Assembly: GCF_040938485.1 (NCBI RefSeq)
Contig: NW_027270908.1
Span: 2,480,001-2,544,000, forward strand
Reading direction: 5' to 3'
DNA: 64,000 nucleotides
Origin: Diadema antillarum
Lineage: Eukaryota
Position numbers and translations under genes: made by a program. Positions 9,701 through 60,700 of the stretch are shown here, in pieces (position 1 is the first letter of the stretch; every line of letters starts with the position of its first letter). The notes beneath the pieces are model-generated. The model saw only the letters and a list, made by a program, of their open reading frames with translations. It was not told the DNA's origin and did not search any database.

Positions 9701-12700
9701 TGGATGAAAGACGGCAAGGAGATCAAGCCCAGCGACAACGTCAAGATCATCAAGGACGGTAAGAAACACAAGATGATCATCAAGAAAGTGGACTTTGACG
9801 ACGACGCCGAGTACAGCTTCACGGCTGGTGATCAGAAGTGTCACTGCGACCTGGTGGTTAAAGGTAAGTTTCAAAGTTATTTAATTTGATTTGATGTGAT
9901 TTGATTTATTTCCGTGTGCATTCAAATACAAATTGAATACAATTTCAAAAGCTCAGACAAAGAATAACAAGTGCAGTGATTTAAAACAATAATGTAACAT
10001 AACACAAATAGATACACATAAGCAATTGTATTGAGCAGTAAACATATACAGAAACATACAATAAGATATAAAGTATTTTTTCAGTAAATAACAGAGATAA
10101 CTAAATGCAGGAGACCACCATCGTGAGCGATTAAGCTTGAAATGGATGGGGACTCATAAAAAGACTAAAAAAAGTTATGACAACGATAAAAATGGTAATC
10201 AAAACATGTATCATTGTGTTAATCAGGCAGGGGACCCGAAACTTTTGTTTTGTTTTGTTTTGTTTCGGGTTTTTTTTTCAGCACGTGTGTGAGGAGGGCA
10301 GGGGAGGCAATTCCCCCTTTTCTATGAGCGAAACCCTCTAAAGTAACGGACTTTCTTGTGTTCTATTTTTCTAATTTCAGTCTGTATTAAAAGTGTGTGG
10401 GTGCGTGTGCGTATGAGGGGATAACGGGGTGGGGGGGGGGGGCGGCTGGCCGGAAACACCCCCGCCACCAAACAAAGTCCACCCCCCCCCCCCGTAACGC
10501 AGCTCCTGTAGTAAAGTTAACGTTCTTATTATTGCCTAATTATATATATATATATATATATATATATATATATATATATATAAGTGAATGTGCTCGTGTA
10601 GTCATCCTTGACATCACTAACGCTATCTTTCTTACCGTGATAATCATGTTGGATGATATTACCGATGACAGTTTAACGGAAGCTTGTTGAGGATGAGTTG
10701 GAGAGGAATGCGACTTGGCTCCAACGATAATTCTGAAGTCTGAATTTCACGCATTCCGTATTATCCTTCATCCTAAATTTCCCTCGTAGCTCCTCCAAAG
10801 ATCAACGTGGATCCGAGATTGACCAATATCACCGTCAAAGCTGGCACGAAGATCGCTATCGAAGCGACGGTCACCGGTTCGCCGACGGCCGTCACAACGT
10901 GGACCAAAGACGACGCGCCGGTCGAATCCACGGAGCGATTTAAGATCGAGGCGGGCAAGGGCCCCAAGGCCTCCATCCGACTCACCATTGACAAGACGGA
11001 GCGATCCGATCTCGGAACGTACACACTGACCGCTGCCAATGACCTTGGCACCGACACAACCATCATCGCTATCACCGTCCTTGGTAAGATTTCATCTTTA
11101 GTCTATGGAAGAAATGAAGAAAATGAAAGAAAGAGAATGTCGTCAAATGGTTAAACAAACAAACAAACAAACAAACAAACAAACAATCAATCAATCATAC
11201 AAACAAACACAAAAAACAGTGCCTTTGGTATTCCGAAAAAAGTCGTTCATGACCGAAAGTGTTCAGCTCACAAGAATCGTGCAATATTATATCTGTAATA
11301 ATTTCTGATTTTTACTTGCACGTTTTCCCTAAATCTTTTCCTAAACAGTTTGGTGTAATAGTGTAATCTATTTTACGTAATTCTTTCTCAACAGACAAGC
11401 CACAGTCGCCCACCAATCTCTCGATCACCGAAACAACTCCGGAGTCGGCGACCGTCACCTGGACACCGCCATCCGATGACGGTGGTAGTCCCGTCATCGA
11501 CTACGTCATCGAGAAGCGTGACATGAAGAGGAACGCGTGGGTGAAAGTCGACACGACCACGGACCTCACGTTCCGCGTGCCTAAGCTTGTGGAAGGCAAT
11601 GAGTACATGTTCCGTGTGAGTGCTCGCAACGAGCTGGGAACCAGCGAACCGATCGCCACCACAGAACCAATAGTGGCGAAATACCAGTTTGGTAAGTAAC
11701 AGAATTTTTGTAATTATCGGTTTTTAATTATACGCTTGTATCGCTTAAAACAAAATGATTATAAATGAAAACAACCTTGCACAAAGGCATAAAAACGTCT
11801 GTCATACCGTGTTAACTAAGTTAACTGCCTTTTCAAAATTTACCATGCATATTAATTCTATGTAAAGGAGCATTGGCAACAAATTATACTGTTTGTTGTG
11901 ATGTTCTTTCTTTTCTTCAAGGTCGATTTTACTTGAAAAAATAAAAGGCAGTACCAAAGGCGGTACCAAAGCAACACAAATCAAAACACAAAAATACAAA
12001 CTAACAAATTAGATACGCCGGTGGTATTATTCTGGTATTCCATATCTAATGGAATCCATTCATGAAGAAGCAAAATGACCCAACCCTATGAATGATACTA
12101 ATAATACTAATGATAATGATAATGATAATAATAATGATAATGATAATAATAATAATAACAATAACAATTATAATGATAATAATGAAAATAATGATAATAA
12201 CAATAATGATAATGATAATAATAATAATAATAATAATAATGATAATAATAATAATAATAATAATAATAACAATAATAATACAACTATATGGTCATTCCAA
12301 TTTCAGACGTCCCACATGCCCCTGGACGTCCAGAGACATCCGACGTTGACCAGACAGAGATGACCGTCACCTGGACACCGCCGGACTTCAACGGTGGCAG
12401 CGAGATCACGGGGTACATCATCGAGAGGAAGGAAGCCGACAAGACCCGCTGGGTGAAGGTCACCAAGGAACCAGTCACCGAACTCACCTACCACGTCAAA
12501 GACTTGATAGAGGGTCTGGTGTATGAGTTCAGGGTCTTTGCTATCAACAAGGCAGGAACCAGCAAGCCAAGCGAGCCCTCTACGTCGACCAAGGCCAAGG
12601 CACCTTATGGTAACTATTTCATTATTTGAAAGAAGTCATTATGCTTCGGTTCACCATTATCATAATGATAGACACTTAGTCTTCCCATACCGAGGCAGCC

Positions 12701-57700: not shown

Positions 57701-60700
57701 TCCATGAAAGTCACGTAGAAGCATTAGCACGTATATCTCCATTCCCTCCAATGTTTGCAGACGCTCCATCAGCACCACACGAACCGACCATCGCCGCCAT
57801 CACAGCCGACTCCGCCACCCTAACGTGGGCGGCGCCTTCCAAAGATGGCGGTTCTCCCATCACAGGTTACATCGTGGAGCGGAAGGATCCGTACACGGCC
57901 CGCTGGTCACCCGTCGAGAGGGTCACCGACACCACGTGCCGGATCCCTGGGTTGAAGGAGGGTAATGAGTACCAGTTCCGAGTGGTAGCAGTGAACAAGG
58001 CCGGACAAGGAGCACCAAGTTCGTCTACAGAACCCAGGGTGGCTAAAACACCTTATGGTAAAATATCCTTCTTTTCATACTCTTGTATGCCCCTCGTCTT
58101 CATGGCATTTTCTCACAATTTTCACGTTTTTTTCAAAGATGGAAATTGAATTAATGAAAAAAAAAGAAAAGAAAAAGAAAATGGGAAATAAAGTGTAAAT
58201 ATGGTATCAAAATACAGACAATGTCATTCCTACTTTCCATCAAAGCCAGATATACCGTTAATGCTTTTATGAAAGCAGATTTTTATCTCAAGCAAACAAG
58301 GCCATCGATGATGTTGCTTGTGTGCAGCAAAGATTAGGAGGGCCATTCTGTCCTATTCTTTGTCATTTCATAGGCTTGTGCATATATATGTTGCTTTTGT
58401 ATTTAGATCGCAGATAATATGGGAACAGCTGTCATCTCTTGCTTGCAAGCTCTTACATAACGCTGATGGTGACTATAAGTTCCTAACTTTGGTGTGGGAT
58501 TTTCACCAACAAAATGATTGGTTCTCAGCCACGCAATTCCATGTAACATTTTAATATCAAATCACAGATGTTCCTGAAGCACCAAGCAAACCACAGGTCA
58601 CTGACGTACAAGCGACAACAGTCGCCCTCAAATGGCGCCCTCCTGCGAGCGACGGCGGATCCCCCGTGACGGGCTACGTGGTGCAGCGGAAGGAGAGGCT
58701 AGCCCTGCGCTGGACACCAGTCAACACCACACCGGTTAGCGACACCATCTTCACCGTCACTGGTCTCACGGAGAGGTCCGAGTACGAGTTCAGGGTGGTG
58801 GCCGAAAACAAGAAGGGATTCGGACCGCCGAGCGAACCCACATCATCGGTTCTTGTGAAACCACCGTACGGTAAGTAACCCAGGCGACAATAAATAATAA
58901 TGAAGACATCGCAAGTAATAACACCATAAATAAGTGACAGCATTTAACATCAGTCAGTGTCAGAGGGGAAATTGGAGTGTTCTTATTGTAGTGCGTCTAA
59001 CTTTTCAATATCATCATCATTGCCCATGTTCTTTATCAAGACCCTATCTTCCTATAAGTGTATACTTAAGGATGATATTCAACCATGATAGACAATATTT
59101 TAACATCGACTGTTTCTTAATCTTTGGATTTTGTTGCTTTCTCAGACCCACCGGGCAGACCAGCTCCACCGGAAGTGACAGATGTTTCTAAGACCAGCAT
59201 CAGCCTCCGCTGGAACCCGCCAGCCTCGGATGGCGGCAGTCACATCTCTGGCTACATCCTGGAGAAGAAGGAGTCCTACGGTCTGCGCTGGCTACCAGCC
59301 ACGTCACAGACCATCCCCACACCGGAAATCACTCTCAAGGACCTCAAGGAGGGCGTGCAGTACGAGTTCCGGGTCATGGCGGTGAACAAGGCAGGCGTTG
59401 GCCCGCCGAGCGACGCGTCACATACGACCACCACCAAGGCTAAGTACGGTAGGTTGTGGCAGTGATACGACGATAGTTATCTCAGTAGAAAGCAATGTCA
59501 TGTGTCATAGCCCTGTATGGTGCTGTGCAATGAAATGGTTTCAAATTTCAGTTTATTTCATAGCAGATCGAATCTTAAACACTGGTAGATTTGCCTACAT
59601 TGCACTCAAGGTCCTGCAATTTCGTCGTCATGACTTTACGTTGTTTATGCAGCATATTTCCGATCAAGCATTTTATTCGTGTTCAACTGTTTTCCCCATA
59701 GGAGTACCATCCCCGCCCAGAGAGCCAGCCATCACGAATGTTGGCGTTAAGTCCATCACCTTATCCTGGACACCCCCATCTTCGGATGGAGGAAGTCCAG
59801 TCACGGGTTATGTCGTCGAGCGCGCAGATCGCTTCAGTACGCGCTGGGTTCCCGTCAGCAGACAACCTATCGCGGACACCAAGGTGGAAGTTCGCGACCT
59901 TCCGGTGAGCGGATCGTTCCAGTTCCGGGTCATCGCGCTCAATGCTGCTGGTGAAAGCCCGCCTTCCCAAACGACAGATCCTGTCGGCATGGCTGGTAAG
60001 ATTGCTATGGGAGATATGTCATGTTCGGTCACTCTTCCATGATTTTCTAACAAATCTCTTCAGGAGCTAAAGCAAGAATTGTTTGAAGCGTATGAGTTGA
60101 AATTCAGCATTTGTCAGAAAATGTGTAGACCCTTGCGCTATGGTGTTATGGATGCATGAAGGAATATATGTCACTCTTGTTACTGCATTTTTAAAGCTGT
60201 CATCTCATTCCCTTACGGATATCAACACTACAGTTAAATTCAGTTTTTACGCTCAGAAATGCTTCAAAGCAGTAAATTAAGTACTCATCTCATACAATTC
60301 CCCATTCAAGCGGGAATAACATCAGAATGCAAATTAATCATTTAAAATTATCTCCATTCTTTGATTTGTATCTAAACGTTATAATGAATTTGTAACATCT
60401 TTTTAGTTAAGACATTCTCTCCATCAGGTTGTACATAATGAATATTCCTAATGCATTTACTCGGTATGTATTAATACGTCCATATGTCTACATACACCTT
60501 CATTGTCTGCTATTTGCCTATTCTATAGTTGCACCGAAGCTGGACACGTACAAGTACCGTGACACCATCACCGTCAAGGTCGGGGCTACGTTCATTCTCG
60601 ACGTGCCATTCCGCGGCTCGCCGAAGCCAAGCGTCAAGTGGACAAAGGACGGCCAGGAGCTCGAATCGACTTCTCGCGTCAAGATCGACACCACCGACCG

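Follow-up and report, generated by a model that had tools for sequence, protein, structure and literature searches.

An Fn3 tract without Ig domains in a titin-family gene

Can a protein of the titin family carry a long segment built from fibronectin type III (Fn3) domains alone, and what would such a segment do? The textbook picture of the family rests on vertebrates, flies and nematodes, in which Fn3 domains are always mixed with immunoglobulin (Ig) domains in short units, and this mixing is taken as the imprint of the thick filament. The question is raised by a 64-kb stretch of the genome of the sea urchin Diadema antillarum (the window, contig NW_027270908.1), in which a run of Ig exons is followed by 62 consecutive Fn3 domains (11395..59995) and then by a region of alternating Ig and Fn3 domains, with all features on the forward (+) strand unless stated otherwise. 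On sequence grounds, the window is the mid-section of a single giant titin-family gene, and we are highly confident both in the identity of the gene as a titin-family member and in the architecture described here.

The window contains zero runs of N and has a G+C content of 39–46%. Ig and Fn3 profiles were built from Pfam-confirmed seed exons (I-set: 2573-2869, 5091-5441, 6058-6408, 6852-7421 and 10777-11151; fn3: 11367-11696, and 21426-22088 and 38418-39284 with two domains each; Ig plus fn3: 60411-61124 and 62186-62815) and scanned over all stop-to-stop segments in six frames. The local Fn3 profile identified 62 full domains, all on the + strand, between 11400 and 59985. Dynamic programming over AG/GT sites gave a splice model of 68 exons across the window, with one frame kept and no stop; three acceptors (16664, 31682, 42357) and one donor (39659) were chosen by paralogous exon alignment and splice-site listing. 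The Fn3 tract itself comprises 56 AG/GT-bounded exons (18,543 nt; 6,181 codons; median intron 475 nt) that form one stop-free frame when spliced, with a predicted product of ~672 kDa and pI 5.7. An earlier note, made from the sequence alone, had reported the same numbers of exons, nucleotides and domains, and the profile scan and splice model arrived at identical figures.

The domain string of the spliced product is eight Ig, 62 Fn3, then Ig-Fn-Fn-Ig-Fn-Fn. Adjacent domains abut, with gaps of -4 to +6 residues and no unstructured linkers, and the Fn3 consensus shows the signature W-x-P-P...D-G-G-S-P-I-T-G-Y...A-x-N-K-A-G. Tract exons are phase 1 at both ends, the sole exceptions being three split domains. 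When the exons were spliced and contiguous pieces of the tract were run against Pfam, 59 of 59 matched fn3 (PF00041) and 0 of 59 matched I-set, while the flanking exons 10777-11151 and 60411-61124 were I-set.

Ig exons hidden in the introns were ruled out with two Ig profiles, one of 10 domains and one of 190 domains from 13 titin-family proteins, applied to both strands in six frames with filters off and open reading frames (ORFs) of at least 12 amino acids. No Ig exon was found on either strand between 11083 and 60529. The seed-based profile gave nothing above 5 bits within the tract interval, and the 190-domain profile peaked at 10 bits, its matches all falling inside Fn3 exons, whereas every real Ig exon scored 53 bits or more; the earlier note's impression that the introns hold no Ig-like exon therefore stands. 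Regular Ig/Fn3 alternation (IFF or IFFF units) is absent from the tract and begins only at 60529.

Both sequence and predicted structure assign the Fn3 domains to the titin A-band type. When one two-domain exon was compared by sequence with solved structures, titin came first, both as chains of human and mouse cardiac thick filaments (8g4l, 8q6t) and as Fn3 tandems (8bnq, 3lpw), and MyBP-C and myomesin ranked lower. AlphaFold modelled this exon as two Fn3 folds (pLDDT 92.8), and the top structural matches of the model were titin Fn3 tandems at 35–41% identity, including the I/A-junction triple I109-I111. Tandem I-set Ig domains, Fn3 domains of the intracellular titin subtype and orthology were all found, placing the gene in the titin/connectin-twitchin family; with A-band-type Fn3, I-set flanks and orthologs named 'titin-like', the family assignment proposed in the note is upheld.

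Internal repeats and duplication history

Upstream of F13 (domains are numbered F1 to F62 along the tract), the tract exons lie at 11395-11691, 12307-12609, 13223-13525, 14265-14567, 14996-15295, 15949-16251, 16664-16966, 17213-17512, 17745-18047, 18523-18828, 19142-19444 and 19878-20180. They include two copies of a three-exon block, F3-F5 (13223..15295) and F6-F8 (15949..17512), that share 75, 95 and 85% protein identity by position. The ratio of nonsynonymous to synonymous substitution rates (dN/dS) was 0.09–0.11 in the three paralogous exon pairs, and alignment was confined to the exons, the introns of the duplicated block no longer aligning. Because of this low dN/dS and the loss of intron alignment, the tract reads as selected coding exons rather than an assembly artefact; the tract exons are evidently under purifying selection. 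An artefact was considered specifically for F4/F7, which are 95% identical, and was ruled out by the combination of alignable exons and unalignable introns. At the DNA level, the F4 (14265-14567) and F7 (16664-16966) exons are 92.6% identical, compared with 77% and 82% for the other two exon pairs of the block; this excess likeness suggests that this one exon underwent gene conversion or was duplicated again later.

Periodicity was clearest in F13-F35 (20910..36967; exons 20910-21209, 21472-22062, 22471-22770, 23535-23834, 24650-25237, 25824-26123, 26576-27163, 27447-27746, 28102-28683, 28857-29156, 30393-30692, 31682-32272, 32727-33023, 33670-34257, 34572-34871 and 36383-36967). Three domain classes are present there: A and B, the first and second domains of two-domain exons, and C, the single-domain exons. 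Identity is 0.59–0.68 within classes versus 0.47 between them, each class forms a clade (SH-aLRT 85–96), and the lag-3 periodicity has p = 5e-5 against 20,000 shuffles. Two extra C-like domains, F17 and F27, are inserted in the region and give it a 4-3-3 layout. A ten-class (4-3-3) super-repeat was considered and was not supported. Lag 10 was significant against shuffling, yet same-class pairs at lag 10 or 20 had an identity of 0.644, no higher than the 0.642 of the remaining same-class pairs, and no specific likeness linked F17 to F27; with no lag-10-specific signal and three classes accounting for the layout, the region is better described as a three-domain unit repeated seven times plus F17 and F27. 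No periodicity was detected in F43-F62. The first 39 domains were evidently expanded by lineage-specific duplication, largely of the three-domain unit.

Between F13-F35 and the distal part of the tract lie the split domain F36 (37360-37541 + 37897-38011) and the exons 38443-39033 and 39363-39659. The distal part, F40-F62 (40123..59995), is encoded by exons at 40123-40713, 41218-41514, 42357-42659, 43179-43481, 43942-44238, 44615-44802, 45460-45574, 46109-46411, 47063-47365, 48175-48474, 48991-49293, 49859-50046, 50628-50742, 51152-51454, 52650-52952, 53791-54090, 54505-54807, 55513-55815, 56186-56488, 57041-57343, 57761-58057, 58568-58870, 59146-59448 and 59702-59995. Like F36, F46 (44615-44802 + 45460-45574) and F51 (49859-50046 + 50628-50742) are interrupted by a phase-0 intron (37541/37897, 44802/45460 and 50046/50628, respectively), and all three introns fall at a shared domain position, at about profile position 62. 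Three Fn3 domains are likewise split at the corresponding locus of the sea star Patiria miniata, and F36 has its reciprocal best hit among them.

Domain trees also separated Fn3 domains by their position relative to Ig. F1 (11395-11691), F63 (60819-61118) and F65 (62489-62767), each directly after an Ig, form a clade (SH-aLRT 98); given this clustering, F1 is assigned to a 'post-Ig' subtype. F64 and F66, each preceding an Ig, form a separate clade (97), and F62, which also precedes an Ig, falls outside it. The exon layout [A-B][C] mirrors [Ig-Fn][Fn], and a class A Fn3 might have been the occupant of an 'Ig slot'. This idea was not supported: class A lies outside both the post-Ig and pre-Ig clades, its AlphaFold fold is an ordinary Fn3, and it was not recognisable in Patiria, Saccoglossus or titin/twitchin.

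Counterparts in other animals

A profile of 59 tract domains was run over a library of 1.84 billion representative proteins, followed by a word search with the best relative. The model of this tract from D. antillarum itself was not found, although library matches extended to at most ~7,600 residues and very long models may therefore be missing. The nearest relatives were RefSeq 'titin-like' proteins of P. miniata (XP_038047568.1) and of the acorn worm Saccoglossus kowalevskii (XP_006823012, 014, 015 and 016), and the sea-urchin gene is, on the reciprocal best hits below, their ortholog.

In Patiria, one RefSeq model (XP_038047568) has 40 Fn3 domains followed by Ig, and a six-frame scan of the genomic locus gave at least 55 consecutive Fn3 domains, starting from the edge of the fetched DNA, followed by four Ig-Fn-Fn units. 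Sixteen reciprocal best hits link F40-F62 to Patiria at one constant offset and lead on into I9, with ortholog identity of 59% versus 47% among paralogs. Upstream of F40, the match to Patiria is not one to one; a weak three-domain period is present in the sea star. The distal 23 domains are, on this evidence, individually kept since at least the echinoid–asteroid split, which is dated to the early Palaeozoic, and the proximal part is best described as rebuilt by duplication within each lineage.

The Saccoglossus models reach further in phylogenetic distance. XP_006823012 consists of 18 Fn3 domains followed by IFFIFFIFFIF, and in a collinear alignment of 2,400 residues it is 49% identical to the window product; XP_006823014 has 19 Fn3 domains, XP_006823015 has 31, and XP_006823016 has ~27 Ig domains followed by 19 Fn3. 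The four models are non-overlapping (highest mutual identity 54%) and their accessions are near-consecutive; should they be neighbouring parts of a single gene, the Saccoglossus tract would perhaps hold a total of up to 87 Fn3 domains. At both borders of the tract, reciprocal best hits to Saccoglossus are collinear, I7-I8-F1 upstream and F60-I9-F63-F65-F66 downstream; F1 pairs in this way with the Fn3 that comes first behind the Saccoglossus Ig run. Because of these border matches, the tract and both its borders predate the echinoderm–hemichordate split.

A second acorn worm, Ptychodera flava, has a 'twitchin-like' gene with 16 Ig domains, 15 Fn3 domains and then IFF/IFFF units, in both the model and gap-free genomic DNA. 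A truncated model was ruled out, the genomic six-frame scan also giving 15 Fn3. The 15 domains (51200-75000 of the fetched locus) are unusually alike, with a mean identity of 0.64 and a peak of 0.74 at lag 2, which points to a very recent two-domain expansion; the locus is perhaps a paralog, or else an ortholog that evolves fast.

Fn3-only runs were also identified outside the deuterostomes. The snail Bulinus truncatus locus (KAH9498302.1) reads III FFF II FFF II, ~43 Fn3, II F, has a strong three-domain period and is followed by a model containing Pkinase; the brachiopod Lingula anatina locus (XP_013419362.1) reads I FFF II FFF II, 16 Fn3, I FFF II F I, with a kinase-bearing model next. The order of Ig, Fn3 tract and Ig-Fn-Fn is conserved in four other animals. 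Among the vertebrate and amphioxus fragments retrieved, Fn3 runs were at most 3–5 domains long (at most 4 in vertebrate fragments). The earlier statement that tandem Fn3 runs are short in the family thus holds for the well-studied titins and fails for the sea star, the two acorn worms, the snail and the brachiopod, where runs range from 15 to at least 55 (perhaps 87). The note had also entertained novelty of the architecture; comparing domain strings across these animals gave similar layouts, leaving the existence of the tract unaffected; uniqueness fails, as the note had allowed for, since automatic gene models in public databases already display this layout.

A metagenome cluster from JGI, intron-less and named 'titin' at source, also contains up to 44 consecutive Fn3 domains, together with F5/8-type-C and laminin-G-like families, on 5–50 kb contigs. 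It is probably microbial and unrelated to muscle titin.

Flanking domains and intronic features

The tract follows an E-rich segment and tandem Ig domains and precedes the Ig-Fn-Fn region, a placement that the earlier note had described correctly for its upstream side. An ORF at 358..825, at the edge of the window, holds the E-rich (putatively PEVK-like) stretch, with ~29% Glu over a 60-residue core of its translation. Eight single-domain I-set Ig exons, I1-I8 (2580..11083), follow; all are phase 1 and score 47–123 bits on the profile. Two of them, I6 (8104-8376) and I7 (9594-9863), score ~47 bits on the Ig profiles versus 93–108 for their neighbours; I7 nonetheless has a reciprocal best hit in Saccoglossus. 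Downstream, four exons of the form [Ig-Fn][Fn][Ig-Fn][Fn] (60529..63435; Pfam I-set and fn3) start an Ig-Fn-Fn region that continues past the window end. There are thus 10 Ig exons in the window, with Pfam I-set E-values of 1e-12 to 1e-21.

Intronic microsatellites were found at 12091-12280, (AAT)n, and 42717-42965, (TCTA)n; in both orientations, the former gives rise to long pseudo-ORFs rich in N or I. Many Fn3 exons also have, exactly opposite them, a long antisense open frame of up to 219 amino acids (40098-40754 and 38736-39356 on the minus strand are examples). The minus strand gave zero profile matches; we take these frames as a codon-usage by-product of the Fn3 exons and not as genes.

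A putative rod and spacer along the thick filament

If each domain is taken as about 4 nm, the 62 domains would span roughly 250 nm. We favour, with middling confidence, a thick-filament-associated rod and spacer. The whole tract would form a stiff rod on or beside the thick filament; the distal 23 domains would dock at fixed sites adjoining the Ig-Fn-Fn region, like the A-band part of titin, and the proximal, copy-number-variable part would be a spacer that sets the length between this distal anchor and a putative spring made of Ig domains and the E-rich segment. Position-specific conservation characterises the filament-bound A-band part of titin. For F40-F62 at least, such a filament-associated rod is favoured because the domains are of the titin A-band subtype, linkers are absent, the tract runs on into the Ig-Fn-Fn region, and the distal part shows conservation of this kind. 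The proximal part, with its variable copy number and symmetric exons, is closer in character to an extensible segment or to a spacer that sets length.

Several observations weigh against a filament-bound rod. Tract length differs widely by taxon (15, 16, ~43, at least 55, 62 and perhaps 87 domains) and the proximal part lacks one-to-one conservation, features that would be more typical of a spring or spacer than of a ruler. Clear periodicity is limited to F13-F35 and is three-fold, rather than a super-repeat of 7 or 11 classes, and it is not obvious that three Fn3 domains (~12 nm) equal the 14.5 nm myosin repeat.

Some of the same observations would suit an extensible, I-band-like spring made from Fn3 rather than Ig domains, which would straighten and, at high load, unfold domain by domain to give a very long working range. 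Such a spring is consistent with a tract that directly follows the tandem Ig and E-rich exon, with 39 proximal domains that are copy-number variable and recently duplicated, like the variable Ig segments of vertebrate titin, and with several-fold differences in length among taxa; whole-domain exons that are all phase 1 at both ends would also allow exon skipping to tune length. However, the closest resemblance of the domains is to thick-filament-bound titin, a generic spring would not need position-for-position conservation of its distal 23 domains, and unstructured linkers are absent. We consider a spring unlikely, if less so than the alternatives that follow.

The same symmetric phase-1 exons, which are skippable without a frame break, could instead constitute a cassette array, each transcript joining only subsets of the 56 exons so that no protein with 62 consecutive Fn3 domains is made. 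Against this, a single RefSeq product in Patiria carries 40 Fn3 domains in a row plus an Ig, three Saccoglossus models join 19 to 31, and every exon is intact, with consensus splice sites and low dN/dS; an array of this kind seems distinctly doubtful. Finally, most other known long arrays of Fn3 alone belong to extracellular proteins, and there are many all-Fn3 proteins among the profile matches, but a tract without function in muscle, whether decaying duplicated exons or a secreted array of the tenascin/usherin type beside Ig exons, is scarcely credible given 18.5 kb of exons without a stop or frame break, dN/dS of ~0.1, a frame and phase common to the Ig exons on both sides, titins as nearest relatives, and the domain order kept in four other animals.

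Returning to the thick-filament rod, a broader and decidedly speculative proposal is that an Fn3-only rod is an old bilaterian thick-filament module, with its three-domain unit matched to the 14.5 nm myosin crown spacing, serving as template or spacer in the non-striated or obliquely striated muscle of ambulacrarians and lophotrochozoans, and that the Ig/Fn3 super-repeats of chordates and ecdysozoans are derived, or the reverse. We think this improbable. If it were true, there would be at least two designs of titin-like rulers, and the ruler function would be older than the vertebrate super-repeat.

Comparison with known titin-family architectures

The sequence class and gene family are already known, and the layout is present in public automatic models. 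These models split the gene into 'titin-like' pieces, masking the architecture. No published description of an Ig-free Fn3 tract in a titin-family protein was found in a literature search that did not cover Steinmetz 2012, Ohtsuka 2011 or Hanashima 2012. A 2025 survey of connectin evolution (Hanashima et al., PMC12198301) includes sea-urchin and acorn-worm sequences only in its SEC14 and kinase trees and reports that genes of the connectin family were duplicated locally; a tract of Fn3 alone was not found described in it. With borders conserved from sea urchin to acorn worm, distal domains conserved one by one to the sea star, and shorter counterparts in snail and brachiopod, a 672-kDa Ig-free Fn3 rod within the family would be a natural experiment on what Ig adds to filament-bound titin, and offers a view on titin-family function in muscles without cross-striation.

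Among known systems, the 'titin-like' proteins of Patiria and Saccoglossus are the closest: they have the same architecture, with orthologous borders and distal domains, and differ in that their automatic models are split, their interior domains do not correspond one to one, and the Diadema A, B and C classes are unrecognisable in them. In Bulinus and Lingula, as in the sea-urchin gene up to its Ig/Fn3 region, a run of Fn3 alone comes after a part rich in Ig and leads into Ig/Fn3, with a kinase-bearing model beyond; however, identity to the sea urchin is only 35–50% without positional orthology, and FFFII repeats stand ahead of the tracts. Long uninterrupted Fn3 runs also occur in extracellular proteins (tenascins, usherin, receptor phosphatases, sidekick), but these match more weakly than titin, and the flanks of the tract have the architecture of a muscle giant protein.

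The Ig-Fn-Fn pattern and exon layout of twitchin, projectin and UNC-22 are seen here from 60529. A canonical twitchin or projectin has ~5,000 residues, Fn-Fn-Ig throughout and a kinase, and the tract gene does not conform to this description. Echinoderm twitchins (sea-urchin, crinoid and sea-cucumber) are separate kinase-containing proteins of ~5,000 residues with ~30% identity, and those of S. purpuratus, Lytechinus, Diadema, Apostichopus and Anneissia differ from the tract gene, their longest Fn3 run being 3. Vertebrate titin has an Ig every 3–4 domains in its A-band, with 7 position classes in the D-zone and 11 in the C-zone super-repeat, whereas the sea-urchin tract has 62 Fn3 domains with no Ig, three classes over 23 domains, and a proximal copy number that is not conserved. 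The two nonetheless share the Fn3 subtype, abutting domains, phase-1 exons, position-for-position conservation of the distal part, and a placement after tandem Ig and an E-rich segment.

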